Positions 3,626-62,057 of a stretch of DNA of 64,000 nt are shown here, in pieces. The notes under the pieces are model-generated. The model saw nothing but the letters and a program-made list of their open reading frames with translations, was not told the origin of the DNA and did not search any database. Made by a program: the position numbers and the translations under genes. The stretch lies in the IMG/VR virus record IMGVR_UViG_3300023181_000025, positions 62,001 to 126,000 of that record; one strand, 5' to 3'. Each line of letters starts with the position of its first letter. Position 1 is the first letter of the stretch.

Positions 3626-4690
3626 TTATCCTAAATCACCAAAACTATCGAAATCTCCAGCTTCAATTGTGGTATCCATGGCACCTACTTCATACCTGTA
3701 ATTTTCAGTTTCTTGATTTGCTACTTGAATCTTAGAAGTATCGGAAAAAGTTCCAAGCCAGCCCCCAATAGGATTATTTTTTTGGTCAAATATTTTTTTG
3801 AATCCGAGCGATACCAAACGATTATTAGCAAGCCATTCAATATATCCTTTGAGTAAACTAGCATTAAACCCAATTAATTCGCCTTGGGAAAATAAATAAT
3901 CCGCCCAAGCTTTTTCATTTTCAACAGTCAATGCAAACAAATCATATACTTTCTGTTCGTTATCCTTCATTATTTGCTGGAAGCCTTCAAGAGGATCTTG
4001 TTTCCAAAACTTCATAATATTTTGAGTTATAGCAACATGAAGAGCTTCGTCGCGTTCAATTAATTGAATTATTGACCCGTTACCCACTAGTTTGCCGCGA
4101 TATTTAAAATACAGTGTGCAAGCGAACGATATGTAAAACGATAGACTTTCGGTGATGTAGGTCGCCAAAACAGCATCAAAAATTTCTTGCTTAATATTTT
4201 TTGGCTCCCCTAAAAGTTTGTCGTAAGAATTCTTTGCAAATTCCATTCGAGAGACAATTTCTTTATCTTCTAGAATAGAATCAAAAAACTGCTTTGGATT
4301 TTTTGTAATATTTTGCAATACCCATGTATAGGACCGAGAGTGAATAGTCTCGTAAAATGCCCATGTTGCACAACAAATTTCAAGTTCTGGGCTAGTTATA
4401 TAACTAGAAACTTCGTGAATACTTCTTGAAAGCATCGAATCTGTTGATGTTTGCCAACGAAGATTATTCTCGAAAATAAACTTTTCCGTAGAATTAAGAG
4501 ACTCATAATCCATGCGGTCCTTTGTAAGATTTATTTCGTCATGCTTCCAAAAGTTTTTGATTTGCTTATCTGTTAACTCAATAAAAATAGGCCTTTTGAC
4601 TAAATCATACCTTTGTAACCCAAGCGACTCCCCCAAAAACATTGGGTTCGCCATGATATCATAATTTTTTGTGTTTAAAACTGTTTTCAT
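3626..4690 (-). CDS. nrdB: ribonucleotide reductase class Ia beta subunit
   Basis: FW...EI.L.KD, ETIHSRSY, FY.SFAC, IERDEALH, QVANQETE; start moved to ATG 4690 just after nrdA stop. Confidence 0.95.
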   Translation of the reverse strand: MKTVLNTKNYDIMANPMFLGESLGLQRYDLVKRPIFIELTDKQIKNFWKHDEINLTKDRMDYESLNSTEKFIFENNLRWQTSTDSMLSRSIHEVSSYITSPELEICCATWAFYETIHSRSYTWVLQNITKNPKQFFDSILEDKEIVSRMEFAKNSYDKLLGEPKNIKQEIFDAVLATYITESLSFYISFACTLYFKYRGKLVGNGSIIQLIERDEALHVAITQNIMKFWKQDPLEGFQQIMKDNEQKVYDLFALTVENEKAWADYLFSQGELIGFNASLLKGYIEWLANNRLVSLGFKKIFDQKNNPIGGWLGTFSDTSKIQVANQETENYRYEVGAMDTTIEAGDFDSFGDLG

Positions 4691-4692
4691 AT

Positions 4693-6939
4693 TTAAATTG
4701 CACATGCTCCTGAAGCGCATCCGTCATCTTCCTTATTGGACATCCCCTCAGAGTTATGTCCGTCATCTTTTTTGGCGTAATACAGTGTTTTTGCGCCTAG
4801 CTTAAACGATAAAAGAATATCGGAGAGAACTCTTTTTACGGTAAGTTTTTCTTTTGAGTAGAAATGGTCAGCAGAAATAGACATATCACAATATTTTTGA
4901 ATTACTGCATAAATCTTAATAAGATTAGTATTATCAGGCATTTCAAAACAACCTTCATAATTCCAGTTTTTGTTTCCGGGCACAAATTGCTTAATAAGAC
5001 CTTGTTTGGATTCTTTTATTTGGAATCTTGATTGAATTGGTCCGACGCCATTTGTTGAGTTGAGGCAAACAGAAGATGCTTCGCATGGCATCATAGCGGT
5101 TAAGGTCATATTGCGCAAGCCCCAAGTTAGGATTTCTTTCCTGAGCCATTCCCAATCCATAGAAAGCGTCCTGTTGCAAACTTCATCCACAGTTTTTTTA
5201 TAACTGTCGATAGGTAGAATTCCATCGGAATAGCTGCTTTCACTAAATAAGGGTGCTGGACCTCTTTCTTTCGCCAAATTCATAGACGCTTTTAGACAAT
5301 AAAATTGAATCTTCTCCATTAATGCATCTACAAATGCAACAGATTCTGGATCTGAGTATTTTAAGTTATTTTTTGCTAATAAAGCCGCTAAGTTGGTTAT
5401 ACCAATCCCAAGGGATCTTTTATTAACTGCGAAGTTTCTGGCTTGTGGGGCAAAGTAATCTTGAATATCTAAAATATTGTCAAGCTGTCTCACGCTGGTT
5501 TCGCAAATTTCTTCTAATTCCTCATCACTTTTCGCTTCTAAAACATTGATAGCGCAAAGCGTGCAAATTCCAATTTCCCCATCCAAATCATAAAGATTTT
5601 TTGTTGGTGTGATATTCTGCAAAATTTCCTGACACAGATTTGAAAATCCAACCTTTTTCTTCCATGGGCTATGGTTGTTTGCATTATCAATATTTAATAT
5701 ATATATTCTTCCGGTTTCAATTCTTTCCTCGGCTAGGCGAGTAAACAGTTCGTTAGCACTTACTGTTTTTTTCATTTTAATCATTGGGTCGTTTTCGTAA
5801 CGAATATAAAGATCATCGAATTCTGGCAAACCGAAAGCTTCGAATAAGCCTTTTACTTCATTGGGGTTGAAAAGAGTAATGTTTCCGTTCTTAATTAATC
5901 TTTCATAAAAAAGCTTCGAAATCCCTATGCTATAATCCAAGCGCCTTACTCGGTTGGCATCTGTTCCTCTATTATTTTTAAGTTGAAGGATGTCCTCAAT
6001 CTCGTAATGCCAAATTGGGAAGGTTGTGGTGGCACTTCCTCCGCGCGCCCCTTGGAGGGTAGCAATAACGATAGATTCAAATGTTTTCAAATAAGGAATT
6101 ACACCTGTATGTAAAACTTGTCCGCCCCGTATAGGGGAGCCAATTGGGCGCAAACTGCCCGTATCTAGGCCAATTCCATATCCTTTTGAAGTCGCTTGAG
6201 ACGTGAAAACTCGTGATGCGTCAATAGACTCTAAAGTATCCAAAACAGGTAGAAGGCAACAAGACGCATATGATCTTGTATTTGTTCTAAGTTTTGACAT
6301 TAATGGAGAGGGCAAACTTATTTTTCTCTTTGTATAGGAATCATAGGCTCTTTTCACATAAAAAACTCTTTTTTCCGGACTTTCATTAATATGACCGGCC
6401 ATTGCCATTAACATGTATGCAAATGAAGGCGTTTCAAATGATTCTCCTGTTGATTTATTATTATAAAGGTATTTTTCCTTTAATTGTTTAACTGCCGCAG
6501 AATCTAATTGAAGATCTCTATCGTGGTGGATCTTTTCATTCAGTTTGTTAATTTCCTTTTGAGAAAAAACTTTTAAAATTTCTGGATCATAAATACCAAG
6601 ATCAATATTCTTTTTTATAAAATCATATAAATGTGGCGGATTTTTTCCTCCCCAAACCTCTTTTCTTAAAGAAAAGATCATTAATCTACCCGCGACTAGG
6701 CTATAATTGGGAGATGTTTCTGAAAATAAATCGCTGGCAGCGTCTATTATCGAACTATGGATGTCCTGGGAATTAATTTTCTTCGATAGACTCATATTGG
6801 CGTTAATAGCTATTAAATTAGCATCAACTCCACTAACCCCCTCTGTTGCCCAATTTATAACTTTATTTATTTTTTCAACGTCGAACAATTCTTGCGAGCC
6901 GTCTCGTTTTATTACTTTCACCTCTTCATTAATACTCAT
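4693..6939 (-). CDS. nrdA: ribonucleotide reductase class Ia alpha subunit with ATP cone
   Basis: VIKRDG ATP cone, ASCCL, SNLCQEI, KTLYY, C-terminal C..GAC. Confidence 0.96.
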   Translation of the reverse strand: MSINEEVKVIKRDGSQELFDVEKINKVINWATEGVSGVDANLIAINANMSLSKKINSQDIHSSIIDAASDLFSETSPNYSLVAGRLMIFSLRKEVWGGKNPPHLYDFIKKNIDLGIYDPEILKVFSQKEINKLNEKIHHDRDLQLDSAAVKQLKEKYLYNNKSTGESFETPSFAYMLMAMAGHINESPEKRVFYVKRAYDSYTKRKISLPSPLMSKLRTNTRSYASCCLLPVLDTLESIDASRVFTSQATSKGYGIGLDTGSLRPIGSPIRGGQVLHTGVIPYLKTFESIVIATLQGARGGSATTTFPIWHYEIEDILQLKNNRGTDANRVRRLDYSIGISKLFYERLIKNGNITLFNPNEVKGLFEAFGLPEFDDLYIRYENDPMIKMKKTVSANELFTRLAEERIETGRIYILNIDNANNHSPWKKKVGFSNLCQEILQNITPTKNLYDLDGEIGICTLCAINVLEAKSDEELEEICETSVRQLDNILDIQDYFAPQARNFAVNKRSLGIGITNLAALLAKNNLKYSDPESVAFVDALMEKIQFYCLKASMNLAKERGPAPLFSESSYSDGILPIDSYKKTVDEVCNRTLSMDWEWLRKEILTWGLRNMTLTAMMPCEASSVCLNSTNGVGPIQSRFQIKESKQGLIKQFVPGNKNWNYEGCFEMPDNTNLIKIYAVIQKYCDMSISADHFYSKEKLTVKRVLSDILLSFKLGAKTLYYAKKDDGHNSEGMSNKEDDGCASGACAI

Positions 6940-19854: not shown

Positions 19855-19932
19855 GCGGGAATAGCTCAATGTAGAGCGCGACTTGGTTTTAAAAATCCCG
19901 TCGAGGCAGCGGTTCAAACCCGTTTTCCCGCA
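19855..19932 (+). ncRNA. tRNA-like RNA with enlarged anticodon arm
   Basis: GCGGGAA/TTCCCGC, normal D/T arms, CGAC-17 nt-GTCG. Confidence 0.7.
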
Positions 19933-21080: not shown

Positions 21081-21083
21081 CAT

Positions 21084-21168
21084 GGAGTATTATGTAAACT
21101 GGTGTTTACGGTTGCTTGGAAAGCAACAGGCCGTTAGTTCGGCAAGGGTTCAATTCCTTAATGCTCCG
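21084..21168 (+). tRNA. tRNA-Ser(GGA)
   Basis: GTTGC-TTGGAAA-GCAAC, long variable arm. Confidence 0.88.
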
Positions 21169-29898: not shown

Positions 29899-29972
29899 GC
29901 GCCGTTAGCTCAGCGGTTAGAGCGGTCCGACTCTAAATTGGATTGTCGGGGTTTCGAATACCTCACGGCGCA
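29899..29972 (+). tRNA. amber suppressor tRNA (anticodon CTA)
   Basis: GCGCCGT/ACGGCGC, canonical D/T arms, TCCGA-CTCTAAA-TTGGA. Confidence 0.88.
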
Positions 29973-30185
29973 CTTTTGACTTAAAAGAAAACATGGTGAC
30001 TAAATGATTATTGTCATGGTTAAGCTAGAAAATACTGCTAGCAGATTATTTAGAGTGATGCGATAGCTTAGCAAGCTGAGATTATTCAAGGGTTGACAAC
30101 AGTTGCCTGATAATCTCAAATATCTAAAGAAAGTTAAAATATTTTCACTTTTTTCTTCCAAAATCTAAACTTTTAGTGTAAATAT

Positions 30186-33147: not shown

Positions 33148-33681
33148 ATGGCCAATACGAAACAGACTGCAACACAATCTGTTTTAGAGCATGGAGAAAG
33201 TGTTTGGAAATACACCCAAAGAATCTTAAAACAAGATTTCGAAGGGATGAAAATTCCAAATTGGCTAAAAGATAATTTTGGAGAGATTATTAGCAATCTT
33301 CATTATCCAAAAACTATACAGGAGTATAACGAACTTCACGATTGCGGGAAACCGTATTGTCTTGAAGTTGATTCTGATGGCAAGAGGCATTTTCCAAATC
33401 ACGCCGAGGTTTCAAAGCGAGTTTATTTAAACTTGCCGGGAGCTAACAGTATAGTCGGCAACCTAATTGGTTTGGATATGATTTTTCATACATTTACTGC
33501 CGAAGAAATTACGGCGCTCAACCTATCAAAGCGAGACTCTTATACCTTGTTGGTAACAGCCTTGTCAGAAATACACAGTAACGCGGAAATGTTTGGAGGA
33601 ATTGAAAGTGTTTCTTTCAAACAAAAATGGAAAAAGCTTGATCGGCGCGGCAATATGATTATGAAGGGAGGCGCAGAATGA
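33148..33681 (+). CDS. HD-domain phosphohydrolase
   Basis: VLEHG, LHDCGKP, HFPNHAEVS. Confidence 0.7.
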   Translation: MANTKQTATQSVLEHGESVWKYTQRILKQDFEGMKIPNWLKDNFGEIISNLHYPKTIQEYNELHDCGKPYCLEVDSDGKRHFPNHAEVSKRVYLNLPGANSIVGNLIGLDMIFHTFTAEEITALNLSKRDSYTLLVTALSEIHSNAEMFGGIESVSFKQKWKKLDRRGNMIMKGGAE

Positions 33682-33992
33682 AAAGATATATGTATGTTGC
33701 CGTAAGGCAAGATATAAGCGGACCCCAGCAAGTAGTTCAGGCATGTCACGCGGCGATTGAAGCTAGTTGGACATATCATTTTGATGGATTTGAACACCCG
33801 TCTGTGATAGTTTTAGGAATGAAAAGCGAAAAAGATCTTAATAAGTTCACGAAATATCTTGACACTTTGGAGTTTGTCCATTATGACGAATTTCGTGAAC
33901 CGGATAGAGATAATGAACTGACAGCAGTTGCAACTGTTGCTATCGGAGAAGAATATAAACACTTATTTAAAAAATATCAATTGTTAAAGTAA
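33678..33992 (+). CDS. second Pth2-like protein
   Basis: MYVAVRQDIS..QQVVQACHA, FREPD..NELTAVA. Confidence 0.7.
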   Translation: MKRYMYVAVRQDISGPQQVVQACHAAIEASWTYHFDGFEHPSVIVLGMKSEKDLNKFTKYLDTLEFVHYDEFREPDRDNELTAVATVAIGEEYKHLFKKYQLLK

Positions 33993-34204: not shown

Positions 34205-34291
34205 GCGTTGGTTGGGGATATTGGTAGTCCTCGCGGAGCTGTAACCTCCGAAACTAATAATTCATTGGACGTTCGATTCGTCTCCAGCGCA
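34205..34291 (+). tRNA. tRNA-Tyr(GTA)
   Basis: CGGAG-CTGTAAC-CTCCG, long variable region. Confidence 0.88.
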
Positions 34292-34294
34292 CTG

Positions 34295-34540
34295 GTAATT
34301 TTAAGGAGGTTGGCTTAGAAGTAGCAATCCTTTAAAAAGTAGAATCTATTCTCCGAATGACCGTAGTAACAACTTGAAGAGAAAATAGAGTTGCGAACGC
34401 TAAACGTAAGCTAGGACTAGGGAGGTAAATCAATATGAGGTTGTAAGAACCTATGAATTGACATAGGCATATCGTGCGGCACTCCGTAATTGGTAAGGCT
34501 GCAAACCGTTCTTTTGGTGTAAAAACATACTTTTAATTAC
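34295..34540 (+). ncRNA. 23S rRNA GTPase-centre (H43/H44, uL11-binding) mimic with ~170-nt insert
   Basis: GGAGGTTGGCTTAGAAGTAGCAATCCTTTAAAAAGT ... GTGTAAAAACATACT, closed by GTAATT/AATTAC. Confidence 0.75.
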
Positions 34541-34572
34541 AAATTGAAACAATAAAATTTATTGTTTCAAAA

Positions 34573-34645
34573 GGCTCGTTGGTGAAATTGGATATCACTC
34601 CAGATTACGACTCTGAGGTTCCTGATTCGAGTTCAGGGCGGGCTA
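34573..34645 (+). tRNA. tRNA-Arg(ACG)
   Basis: loop TTACGAC. Confidence 0.88.
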
Positions 34646-34848
34646 CATGAATAACATTCCAAGAAGAAATGATATGAGCCAATGGGTTGAGGCTGAGGGA
34701 TTGATTTTTGATGCCCTTGTAGGGGTTGAATCTATGGGCGCAGACCCATTGCTGACAGATGCGGTTGTTTTGCTTGAGAAAGCGAGAAGTAAAGTGGCGG
34801 ATTATGTTGACAAGATGAATGAAATATTGTAACTTATAAAGAACATTA

Positions 34849-34974: not shown

Positions 34975-35256
34975 ATGAAATTACCAGTTCTATATGATGA
35001 GATTCCACCAAAAGAACGGTGGAAAGTTAGAGAAGAATATATCAAAGTTCAAGACGGTCTATGTCAACATTGCAAAAACCCCTTAGTGGGACTAGCTTCG
35101 ACAGAAGTAATGAGTAAAAAAATAAATTTAAACTTATTTCCTGAAGCATTTCTAGATCATCCAATCCATCTTCATCATTGCCATAAAACAGGCTTGACTA
35201 TTGGGGCTGTTCATGCTAGATGTAATGCAGTTTTGTTTCAGTATTATGGAGAATAA
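34975..35256 (+). CDS. endonuclease VII/HNH-like small nuclease
   Basis: Q.GLC.HC, HLHHCH.TG...G.VH.RCN. Confidence 0.7.
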   Translation: MKLPVLYDEIPPKERWKVREEYIKVQDGLCQHCKNPLVGLASTEVMSKKINLNLFPEAFLDHPIHLHHCHKTGLTIGAVHARCNAVLFQYYGE

Positions 35257-61637: not shown

Positions 61638-62057
61638 ATGAATAAACCACCTGATATTATCATAACTACCGCCGCTTCGGGCGCGGGAAAATCGACTTTT
61701 TCTAAATTGCTATGCGACAATCAGTTGGGCTGGGTGTCAGTGGAGGCCGATTCATTTTTTTACGATTCCCAAGGAAATTACAATTTCGATGCGTCGAAAC
61801 TTGGGCTAGCCCACAAAAGTTGCCAAGATCAATTCTTAAGATATCTTAAGGAACCATCCGTAAAGACTATTATTGTGGCCAATACAAATACCAAACCCGC
61901 AGACTATAAGTTCTATGAGGACGCGGCAAATAAGTTGGGGTGCCGGATTTTCCACATTATCATTCAAAATCGCCACGGAAATGAAAATGTCCACAATGTC
62001 CCATTTCAGACTCTTGATAGACAAAAAGACAATATTTTAAATAACATTAAGCTATGA
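61638..62057 (+). CDS. AAA_33/polynucleotide-kinase-like P-loop protein
   Basis: ASGAGKST, EAD.FF, V.NTN, N.HNVP. Confidence 0.8.
   Translation: MNKPPDIIITTAASGAGKSTFSKLLCDNQLGWVSVEADSFFYDSQGNYNFDASKLGLAHKSCQDQFLRYLKEPSVKTIIVANTNTKPADYKFYEDAANKLGCRIFHIIIQNRHGNENVHNVPFQTLDRQKDNILNNIKL

Follow-up and report, generated by a model that had tools for sequence, protein, structure and literature searches.

A phage RNA family resembling the GTPase-associated centre of 23S rRNA, encoded among tRNA genes

An rRNA-like element between two tRNA genes

The window analysed here, a stretch of 64,000 nt from virus record IMGVR_UViG_3300023181_000025 (positions 62,001 to 126,000), carries a segment of about 250 nt, set between two tRNA genes, that resembles the GTPase-associated centre (GAC) of 23S rRNA (helices H42–H44, nt 1051–1108, the uL11-binding 58-mer). 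This raises the question of whether the segment is a stray piece of rRNA or an RNA gene in its own right, and what such a gene might do. The initial annotation had read it as a selected, free-standing mimic of H43 and H44 with an added domain, and this reading is supported by covariation, by the architecture of its relatives and by switches of a base triple. Sequence comparison identifies the element as a member of a family of predicted stable-RNA genes in phage tRNA operons with a core built like the GAC in both secondary and tertiary structure (the end of H42, H43, H44 and the 1071 and 1072 triples). To judge from its alignments and locations, the family is under selection for the GAC fold and tied to tRNA operons. 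The parts of the element are as follows, with rRNA positions in E. coli numbering.

34294..34543 (+), whole GAC-like RNA element, full-length match to covariance model R1 (model positions 1-173, 67.6 bits, E ~4e-15)
34295..34305 (+), closing stem, 5' strand, H42-like (E. coli positions 1045-1055), partner 34530-34540
34307..34331 (+), H43-like hairpin (1057-1081), from sequence, Rfam and family comparison
34332..34340 (+), junction strand 1082-1090, UUAAAAAGU, from sequence and family comparison
34341..34516 (+), inserted domain of 176 nt between 1090 and 1091, with covarying base stem and class-A module
34517..34529 (+), H44-like hairpin G1091-C1100 (GUGUAAAAAC; hairpin proper 34517-34526) plus 1101-1103
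34530..34540 (+), closing stem, 3' strand (1104-1114), from sequence and covariation

The bacterial H43 consensus given in the initial annotation matched 34305-34340 with three mismatches (33/36 identical) and matched nowhere else, and 0/100 shuffled windows gave a match. The hairpin loop (34315-34323, UUAGAAGUA) contains A1067 at 34317 and U1072 at 34322, and a G1062·A1076 mismatch lies at 34312/34326. The H44 counterpart had been placed far downstream, at 34517-34531 (GTGTAAAAACATACT). Since this string differs from the H44 consensus at 5/15 positions, which is not significant alone, the assignment needed the relatives, and family comparison identified the distal hairpin as the correct one. 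Rfam placed H44 in a short hairpin directly after H43, which is not conserved in the relatives, whereas the distal hairpin is. The latter contains U1092-A1099, G1093·A1098 and A1095, bearing out the proposed compensatory change of C1092-G1099 to U-A; the third of the H43 differences, C1072 to U, is the third member of a known base triple. In the junction, A1087 (34337) pairs with U1102 (34528), a pair that is G-C in most relatives and thus a further compensatory one. The proposed closure by GTAATT/AATTAC (34295-34300 and 34535-34540) was found to be part of an 11-pair stem that includes a 2x2 U·U internal loop (34295-34305 with 34530-34540).

The inserted domain opens with a base stem (34341-34345 with 34508-34512), carries the class-A module GGCAC-hairpin-GGUAAGGCUG at ~34474-34503 and ends in an invariant UUUG linker (34513-34516). 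Folding energy was uninformative by itself (z = -1.5 for the whole element and +0.7 for the insert alone, whose fold is not unusually stable). The Rfam bacterial large-subunit rRNA (LSU) model gave a local match of 49 nt to the element (18.8 bits, E = 6e-4 for 301 nt searched, model positions 1095-1146), and the gathering score of RF02541 (50 bits) was reached neither in the window nor in the loci of 16 relatives. Apart from this match, the Rfam 15 covariance models (E up to 10) returned a chance HSUR match and neither GOLLD nor ROOL. By blastn against the E. coli rrn operon only the H43 region matched, and Rfam found no other rRNA sequence in the 64-kb window, in agreement with the earlier statement that none flanks the element.

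Relatives in viral genomes

IMG/VR was scanned with exact patterns from the H43 side and, independently, from the H44 side, and the matches were filtered. Covariance model R1, built from eight short-insert relatives with the window left out, recovered the window's element and found full-length elements in at least ~50 viral contigs; the pattern scans are seed-biased, and counts made from the listed matches are lower bounds. R1 is specific, since ~83 loci with only a chance 14-mer seed gave one weak match, and the real E. coli GAC, used as a positive control, scored 44 bits. At least ~60 unrelated phage contigs share this architecture and insertion point, and phage-type copies were found in three metagenome-assembled genomes (MAGs). 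The relatives' contigs are mostly large, at 85-413 kb.

Every member has the same order of parts: closing stem, H43-like hairpin, junction, insert, H44-like hairpin and return strand. The closing stems comprise 9-11 pairs whose sequence varies by member while complementarity is kept. The family junction (1082-1090) reads UUUAAAGAGU and the H44-like hairpin G(U/C)GUAAnA(A/G)C. The H44 motif, which was not in the search seed, follows the H43 seed in 20/20 members; the regular expression used for locating it specified G1093, U1094, A1095 and A1098, which qualifies the constancy of these four positions in the H43-seeded set. One contig, L199 (L numbers denote loci), contains two strong copies of different insert classes (2698-2898 and 4759-5058) and a weak third copy (3885-4053) with C1072 and a degenerate 3' half.

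Searching GenBank phages with blastn and megablast at the default E-value, using the element and the surrounding 10 kb, returned nothing. A search of the same phages with the 54-nt core (E up to 10) led to seven cultured phages, confirmed by R1 at 66-89 bits:

Pseudomonas phage UNO-G1W1, copy between tRNA-Trp and tRNA-Arg
Pseudomonas phage pf16, copy between tRNA-Asn and tRNA-Pro
Aeromonas phage 4_4572, R1-confirmed copy
Xanthomonas phage XacN1 (L238:826-1476), copy directly 3' of a gene annotated as 2'-5' RNA ligase, an RNA-repair-type enzyme
Xanthomonas phage XaC1, R1-confirmed copy
Ralstonia phage RSP15, R1-confirmed copy
Cronobacter phage GAP32, R1-confirmed copy

In these records the element is unannotated or overlapped by a small 'hypothetical protein'. 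Paenibacillus phage Pd_22F (L240, MZ092003.1 82476-85514) was rejected as a member, its match being a real, near-complete bacterial 23S (2619 bits over 2.6 kb). This 23S gene lies in an unannotated stretch and is either host DNA carried in the phage genome or an error of assembly.

Covariation and the base triple

The homologues covary strongly. In the 18-member alignment, which was fitted to the model and thereby favours structure, 94.6% of cells were paired compared with 67.6% in column shuffles (0/500 shuffles reached the observed value), and the covariation score was 0.70 against 0.19 in shuffles; a model-independent, anchor-based count agreed. Changes on both sides were seen in 17/22 modelled pairs, and sliding the 3' partners by 1-3 columns lowered pairing to 29-60%. 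All nine pairs of the closing stem change on both sides and 93% are paired in the 18 members, and the insert base stem is 98% paired with both-sided changes in 3/3 pairs. The H43- and H44-like hairpins thus defined meet in a three-way junction with the closing helix, as in the GAC fold.

In the real GAC, C1072 forms a triple with C1092-G1099 that is stacked on the G1071·(G1091-C1100) triple (PMC2952862; PMC8614978). In the family, the 1072·(1092-1099) triple is U·(U-A) in ~45 copies and C·(C-G) in seven, with none mixed. The U type comprises all metagenomic copies except L345, plus RSP15, and the C type comprises six cultured phages and L345. Because the U type also occurs in the H44-seeded set, it is not an artefact of the H43 seed. 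Both states were found within class A (the window, L080, L112 and L199b with U; pf16, UNO-G1W1 and 4_4572 with C), within class B (RSP15, L218 and L214 with U; XacN1, XaC1 and GAP32 with C) and within the class bearing a sarcin-ricin-loop-like (SRL-like) hairpin (L002, L157 and L160 with U; L345 with C). With both states present inside three insert classes, at least three joint switches of positions 1072, 1092 and 1099 are indicated. In vitro, a 58-nt GAC fragment given the compensated (UA)U triple reportedly regains its tertiary fold and binds L11 again (Conn, Gutell and Draper, Biochemistry 1998). Among real 23S genes carrying U1072, 31/33 also carry U1092. The 23S of the Candidatus Phlomobacter fragariae MAG (L312) combines U1072 with C1092 (GCGUA), uncompensated, and is the only such case in the 33.

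Conserved and drifting positions

Conservation was counted on H44-seeded members only (n=20), which leaves H43 unbiased. Invariant positions are U1060, U1066, U1072, A1077, U1083, A1085, G1087, A1088, G1089 and U1090, and at least 95% conservation was found at G1062, G1063, G1071, C1075, C1076 and U1081. The tertiary core is retained, with U1060, A1088, U1065·A1073, G1071 and A1077 conserved at 90-100%; G1093·A1098 is constant in the H43-seeded set, in which the pattern that located H44 specified both bases. Within the helices, 1058:1080 shows four pair types and 1064:1074 changes from C-G to A-U. Fourteen members have A at position 1067, five G and one U, so that A1067, present in the window's own copy, is not conserved family-wide. 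The loop tip (1067-1070) is variable: at position 1068 G occurs in 12 members and A in 8, and position 1069 takes four different bases.

The C-terminal domain of uL11 contacts 1058-1060, 1062-1065, 1075-1083 and 1088, and thiostrepton and the N-terminal domain contact A1067, 1068-1070 and 1095-1098 (PMC1802607). On this comparison the family keeps the folded core and the footprint of the uL11 C-terminal domain, not the A1067 needed by thiopeptides and the elongation factor EF-G. The initial annotation had also invoked thiostrepton and the translational GTPases; the lack of conservation of A1067 across the family argues against mimicry of such a site as the general function. Sequestration of uL10 had been suggested too. 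The H42-like closing stem shows 4-5 pair types per position and no conserved sequence, which makes uL10-(bL12) binding unlikely.

Association with tRNA genes

The element is closely framed by tRNA genes in the window.

34205..34292 (+), tRNA-Tyr (GTA), upstream neighbour, by ARAGORN
34573..34646 (+), tRNA-Arg (ACG), downstream neighbour, by ARAGORN
34546..34568 (+), spacer hairpin between element and tRNA-Arg, perfect 10-bp stem (GAAACAATAA/TTATTGTTTC) with 3-nt loop, in the 32-nt spacer

The closing stem begins 3 nt past the 3' end of tRNA-Tyr, and no promoter- or terminator-like site was seen between the tRNAs and the element in the window. The spacer hairpin is not followed by a T-run and is therefore not terminator-like; it might act in processing. 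Of the tRNA genes in the fetched loci, 167 share the strand of the element and 3 run opposite to it, and in eight cases the gap between element and tRNA is 0-6 nt. No recurrent protein family was found beside the phage copies, the tRNAs being the only constant partner, and no ribosomal-protein (r-protein) gene was found in any examined locus, where the flanks are tRNA genes or small phage open reading frames (ORFs). The tRNA regions of three relatives also contain tmRNA genes (L092:1740-2070; L023:1260-1586; L207, ~400 nt upstream of the element).

Inserted domains

Across members the insert measures ~30-350 nt, opens with a covarying stem of 3-5 bp and closes with an invariant UUU plus G. The inserts form conserved classes that are unrelated to each other; the module GGCAC-hairpin-GGUAAGGCUG of class A is invariant in seven members, three of them cultured phages. 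The shortest phage copy (L136, 97 nt) has little or no insert.

The long inserts of four members contain an SRL-like hairpin (UGCAAnAGUACGnGAGGAGnCUGCA) with the 12-nt sarcin-ricin core and a GNRA loop, which in L002 is an exact 13-nt match to E. coli 2653-2665.

L002:4870-5287, SRL-bearing element, core AGUACGnGAGGA on a UGCA stem
L157:5768-6191, the same
L160:2840-3400 (-), the same
L345:5580-6030, the same

In these four the GAC and the SRL, the two rRNA elements that form the GTPase-binding site of the ribosome, occur together. An SRL in every member was considered and rejected, as only these four carry one; the SRL hallmarks (AGUA/GA bulged-G motif, C-G closure and GNRA tetraloop) are absent from the window's element. 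Alignment of the class-A string AGUACAGAGGCAC with the SRL takes two indels, and this string was not counted as one. A likeness of the class-A module to 23S ~2494-2512 and H97 is weak, was seen by eye only and is not claimed.

Free-standing copies in cyanobacteria

Scanning genome contigs for the exact U-type H43 18-mer yielded 102 listed loci. Of these, 33 are real 23S genes of bacteria of the candidate phyla radiation (CPR), DPANN archaea and similar lineages, and the lack of any ordinary host lineage among the real 23S matches to the exact 18-mer indicates that the U-type phage copies are not recent copies of host rRNA. Three loci are the R1-confirmed phage-type copies in MAGs. Another 49 represent an insert-less free-standing version in filamentous cyanobacteria (Nostoc, Calothrix, Microcoleus, Moorena and others). 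Among the remaining 17, six have a directly following H44 with little other 23S similarity and 11 are chance or truncated matches.

L243-L342 (49 loci within this range, e.g. L244:4355-4480, L260, L265 and L291), cyanobacterial copies

Each cyanobacterial copy has ~45 conserved nt on each side and no other 23S similarity, and Rfam returned local LSU fragments only (53-59 bits). Ten copies lie inside long tRNA arrays (10-35 tRNAs). Most others are found in a fixed arrangement of a VWA (CoxE-like) protein, the RNA, an uncharacterised protein of ~276 aa and a ThiF/E1-like protein. The ~276-aa protein had no match in PDB, Pfam, NCBIfam or PADLOC, and its predicted structure reached a predicted local distance difference test (pLDDT) value of 43. 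No TROVE domain was found beside the cyanobacterial copies, and their partner proteins have no homologue in the phage loci. Long tRNA arrays of cyanobacteria are reported to be induced under translational stress (PMC8421152), and the papers on them make no mention of such an RNA.

Proposed role and alternatives

From the layout, the element would be transcribed together with the flanking tRNAs and released by tRNA-processing enzymes, with RNase P acting at the downstream tRNA and 3' maturation at the one upstream; the product would be an RNA of ~250 nt, sealed at its ends by the closing stem. Such an RNA could act in trans as a decoy of the L11 stalk, binding a protein that recognises the folded GAC. 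Host uL11, engaged through its C-terminal domain, is the best candidate ligand because the invariant nucleotides are those of the tertiary core and the uL11 footprint, not the factor and antibiotic contact A1067. We therefore favour, tentatively and as the likeliest single role, a trans-acting GAC decoy binding uL11, which fits the conservation pattern best. Candidate outcomes would be withdrawal or buffering of uL11, altered activation of RelA, or a ribonucleoprotein carrying the variable insert; damping of the stringent response, which had been suggested for this locus, is speculation. Several points weigh against the uL11 decoy. The G1062·A1076 mismatch of the window's copy lies inside the footprint of the uL11 C-terminal domain, and the 60-400-nt insert at 1090/1091 may bear on uL11 docking. 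Most cellular uL11 is in ribosomes, so the benefit of a sponge is doubtful. Any partner recognising the GAC fold would demand the same core, and the pattern thus does not single out uL11; nor does uL11 binding explain the SRL-like hairpin of four members.

The main rival, which we consider possible though somewhat doubtful, is that the free RNA would serve as a decoy or antidote that soaks up a toxin or defence effector attacking the factor-binding site of the ribosome. A parallel would be the phage tRNAs that substitute for tRNAs attacked by host nucleases or escape the attack. The H44 loop bases G1093, U1094, A1095 and A1098 accompany the H43 seed in 20/20 copies, the search pattern having specified those positions, and the four hairpins with the 12-nt SRL core and GNRA loop would suit such a bait, as would the fact that no genomic neighbour but the tRNAs is constant. 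In cyanobacteria the copies are found in tRNA arrays of the stress-inducible type or beside VWA/E1-like genes resembling parts of conflict systems. Tre23, an interbacterial toxin of the type VI secretion system, ADP-ribosylates H44 at 1095-1098 and is reported to act on translating ribosomes (PMC8661411). It provides a precedent for an attack on exactly this loop, but as an interbacterial toxin acting on translating ribosomes it also counts against the toxin decoy. So do the absence of the SRL from most members, the variable tip of the H43 loop, the lack of any toxin gene linked to the phage copies and the absence of the cyanobacterial partner proteins from the phage loci. We know of no anti-phage system aimed at the GAC, which again weakens this explanation.

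The GAC fold might instead be a mere compact, nuclease-resistant scaffold, possibly stabilised by protein, with the variable insert as the working part. The conserved insert classes, among them a class-A module common to the window and three cultured phages, and the covarying insert base stem are consistent with this. However, all members have only the GAC core in common, the cyanobacterial copies and the shortest phage copies such as L136 have little or no insert, and the inserts range widely in size and are unrelated between classes, which makes a mere scaffold unlikely.

A mimic of the factor-binding site that would titrate or misdirect translational GTPases, RelA or the tRNA elbow appears slightly less likely still. 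EF-G is said to bind oligoribonucleotides mimicking the SRL and the thiostrepton domain (Munishkin and Wool 1997), the GAC and SRL stand together in L002, L157, L160 and L345, and position 1067 is a purine in 19/20 unbiased members. On the other hand, A1067, near-universal in real 23S, is found in only 14/20 members, positions 1068-1070 drift, and most elements, that of the window among them, lack an SRL.

Covariation and distribution together rule out a decaying fragment of host 23S, and equally a chance likeness: the 33/36 identity to H43 does mean that the core ultimately descended from, or converged on, rRNA, but no 23S sequence flanks the loci, the closing stems are unrelated in sequence, the architecture and insertion point recur across unrelated phage contigs with compensatory changes throughout, the U-type triple is unlike the 23S of ordinary hosts (the exact U-type 18-mer being found in real 23S only of CPR, DPANN and similar lineages), and the genuinely captured 23S of Pd_22F looks quite different.

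Returning to decoys acting in trans, we advance one wider proposal, with a little less confidence than the uL11 decoy. Large phages and, independently, filamentous cyanobacteria may deploy free-standing replicas of the factor-binding centre (the GAC always, the SRL sometimes) from tRNA operons, either shielding translation from ribosome-directed attack or re-wiring uL11/RelA-dependent control during infection or translational stress.

Comparison with known RNAs

The element shares with the 23S GAC the three-way junction, the H43 and H44 hairpins and the tertiary nucleotides U1060, A1088, U1065·A1073, G1071, 1072·(1092-1099), G1093·A1098 and A1095. It differs in being free-standing, with an unrelated closing stem instead of the H42-H41 continuation, in its added domain and UUUG linker at 1090/1091, in a loop tip (1067-1070) that is not conserved, and in being encoded in phage tRNA operons rather than an rrn operon. 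To our knowledge, the mimics of rRNA described to date are cis-acting r-protein leaders. These autoregulatory leaders, such as the L10 leader of rplJL (RF00557), likewise imitate an rRNA protein site outside the ribosome, and in the same stalk region. However, they are cis-acting 5' untranslated regions of r-protein operons and only loosely rRNA-like, whereas the element is a separate predicted stable-RNA gene among tRNAs and near-identical to rRNA in its core; no r-protein gene was found nearby and no Rfam leader matched.

GOLLD and ROOL are also phage-borne, tRNA-adjacent structured non-coding RNAs of unknown function, but the element is unrelated to them in sequence and structure (no Rfam match), much smaller and recognisably rRNA-derived. 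The bacterial and phage Y RNAs (YrlA) mimic tRNA and are bound by Ro60. They resemble the element as stable non-coding RNAs that mimic a component of translation and act with a protein partner, and they differ in mimicking tRNA rather than rRNA and in their linkage to rsr/Ro60; no Ro60 gene was seen beside the phage copies. Phage RNA decoys include a pseudo-ToxI antitoxin RNA and tRNAs that withstand anticodon nucleases. If a decoy reading is right, the logic would be the same by analogy, a phage RNA standing in for or shielding a host RNA target, except that the element has no linked toxin or repeat array and mimics an rRNA domain.

Rfam 15 contains no such family, and no description of such an RNA was found in the full-text literature, a coverage outside which most subscription journals fall; the family, widespread in large phages and filamentous cyanobacteria, is thus apparently undescribed. 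If the proposal holds, viruses would have a novel type of non-coding RNA, a processed and almost exact copy of a functional centre of the ribosome with a gene of its own, conserved across phages of many hosts as well as cyanobacteria; phage 'tRNA regions' would gain a new purpose, and 'rRNA-domain decoy' RNAs would form a class that parallels the phage tRNAs. The family is testable in cultured phages of laboratory hosts such as Pseudomonas putida and P. fluorescens, the presumed ligand uL11 is easily purified, and the biophysics of the 58-nt GAC fragment supplies ready mutants, including the base-triple variants used by nature here. Attention is also drawn to gaps of 200-300 nt left unannotated in published genomes of phages, and to the conserved cyanobacterial RNA-VWA-E1-like locus.

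Other features of the window

Further genes of the tRNA region in the window were recorded. A tRNA with the anticodon CTA (29899-29973; amber suppressor, labelled tRNA-Pyl by ARAGORN) lies in the array; stop-codon recoding was considered and rejected, as ORF statistics gave no sign of TAG recoding in the window. Rfam added a tRNA-Sec-like gene (21083-21168; 52 bits, just above threshold) and a further tRNA absent from the ARAGORN list (19855-19932), and with these extra calls the array comprises ~20 tRNA genes. On the 5' side of the tRNA block, an ORF of 104 aa (33678-33992, +) has a weak PTH2 match (20.5 bits; Pfam cutoff 23) and a PHROG 'hydrolase' match, and may be another translation-related gene beside the element. 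Among the tRNA genes, a small ORF (34975-35256, +) weakly matches endonuclease VII / HNH-like proteins; the tRNA regions of phages often contain genes of the homing-endonuclease type.
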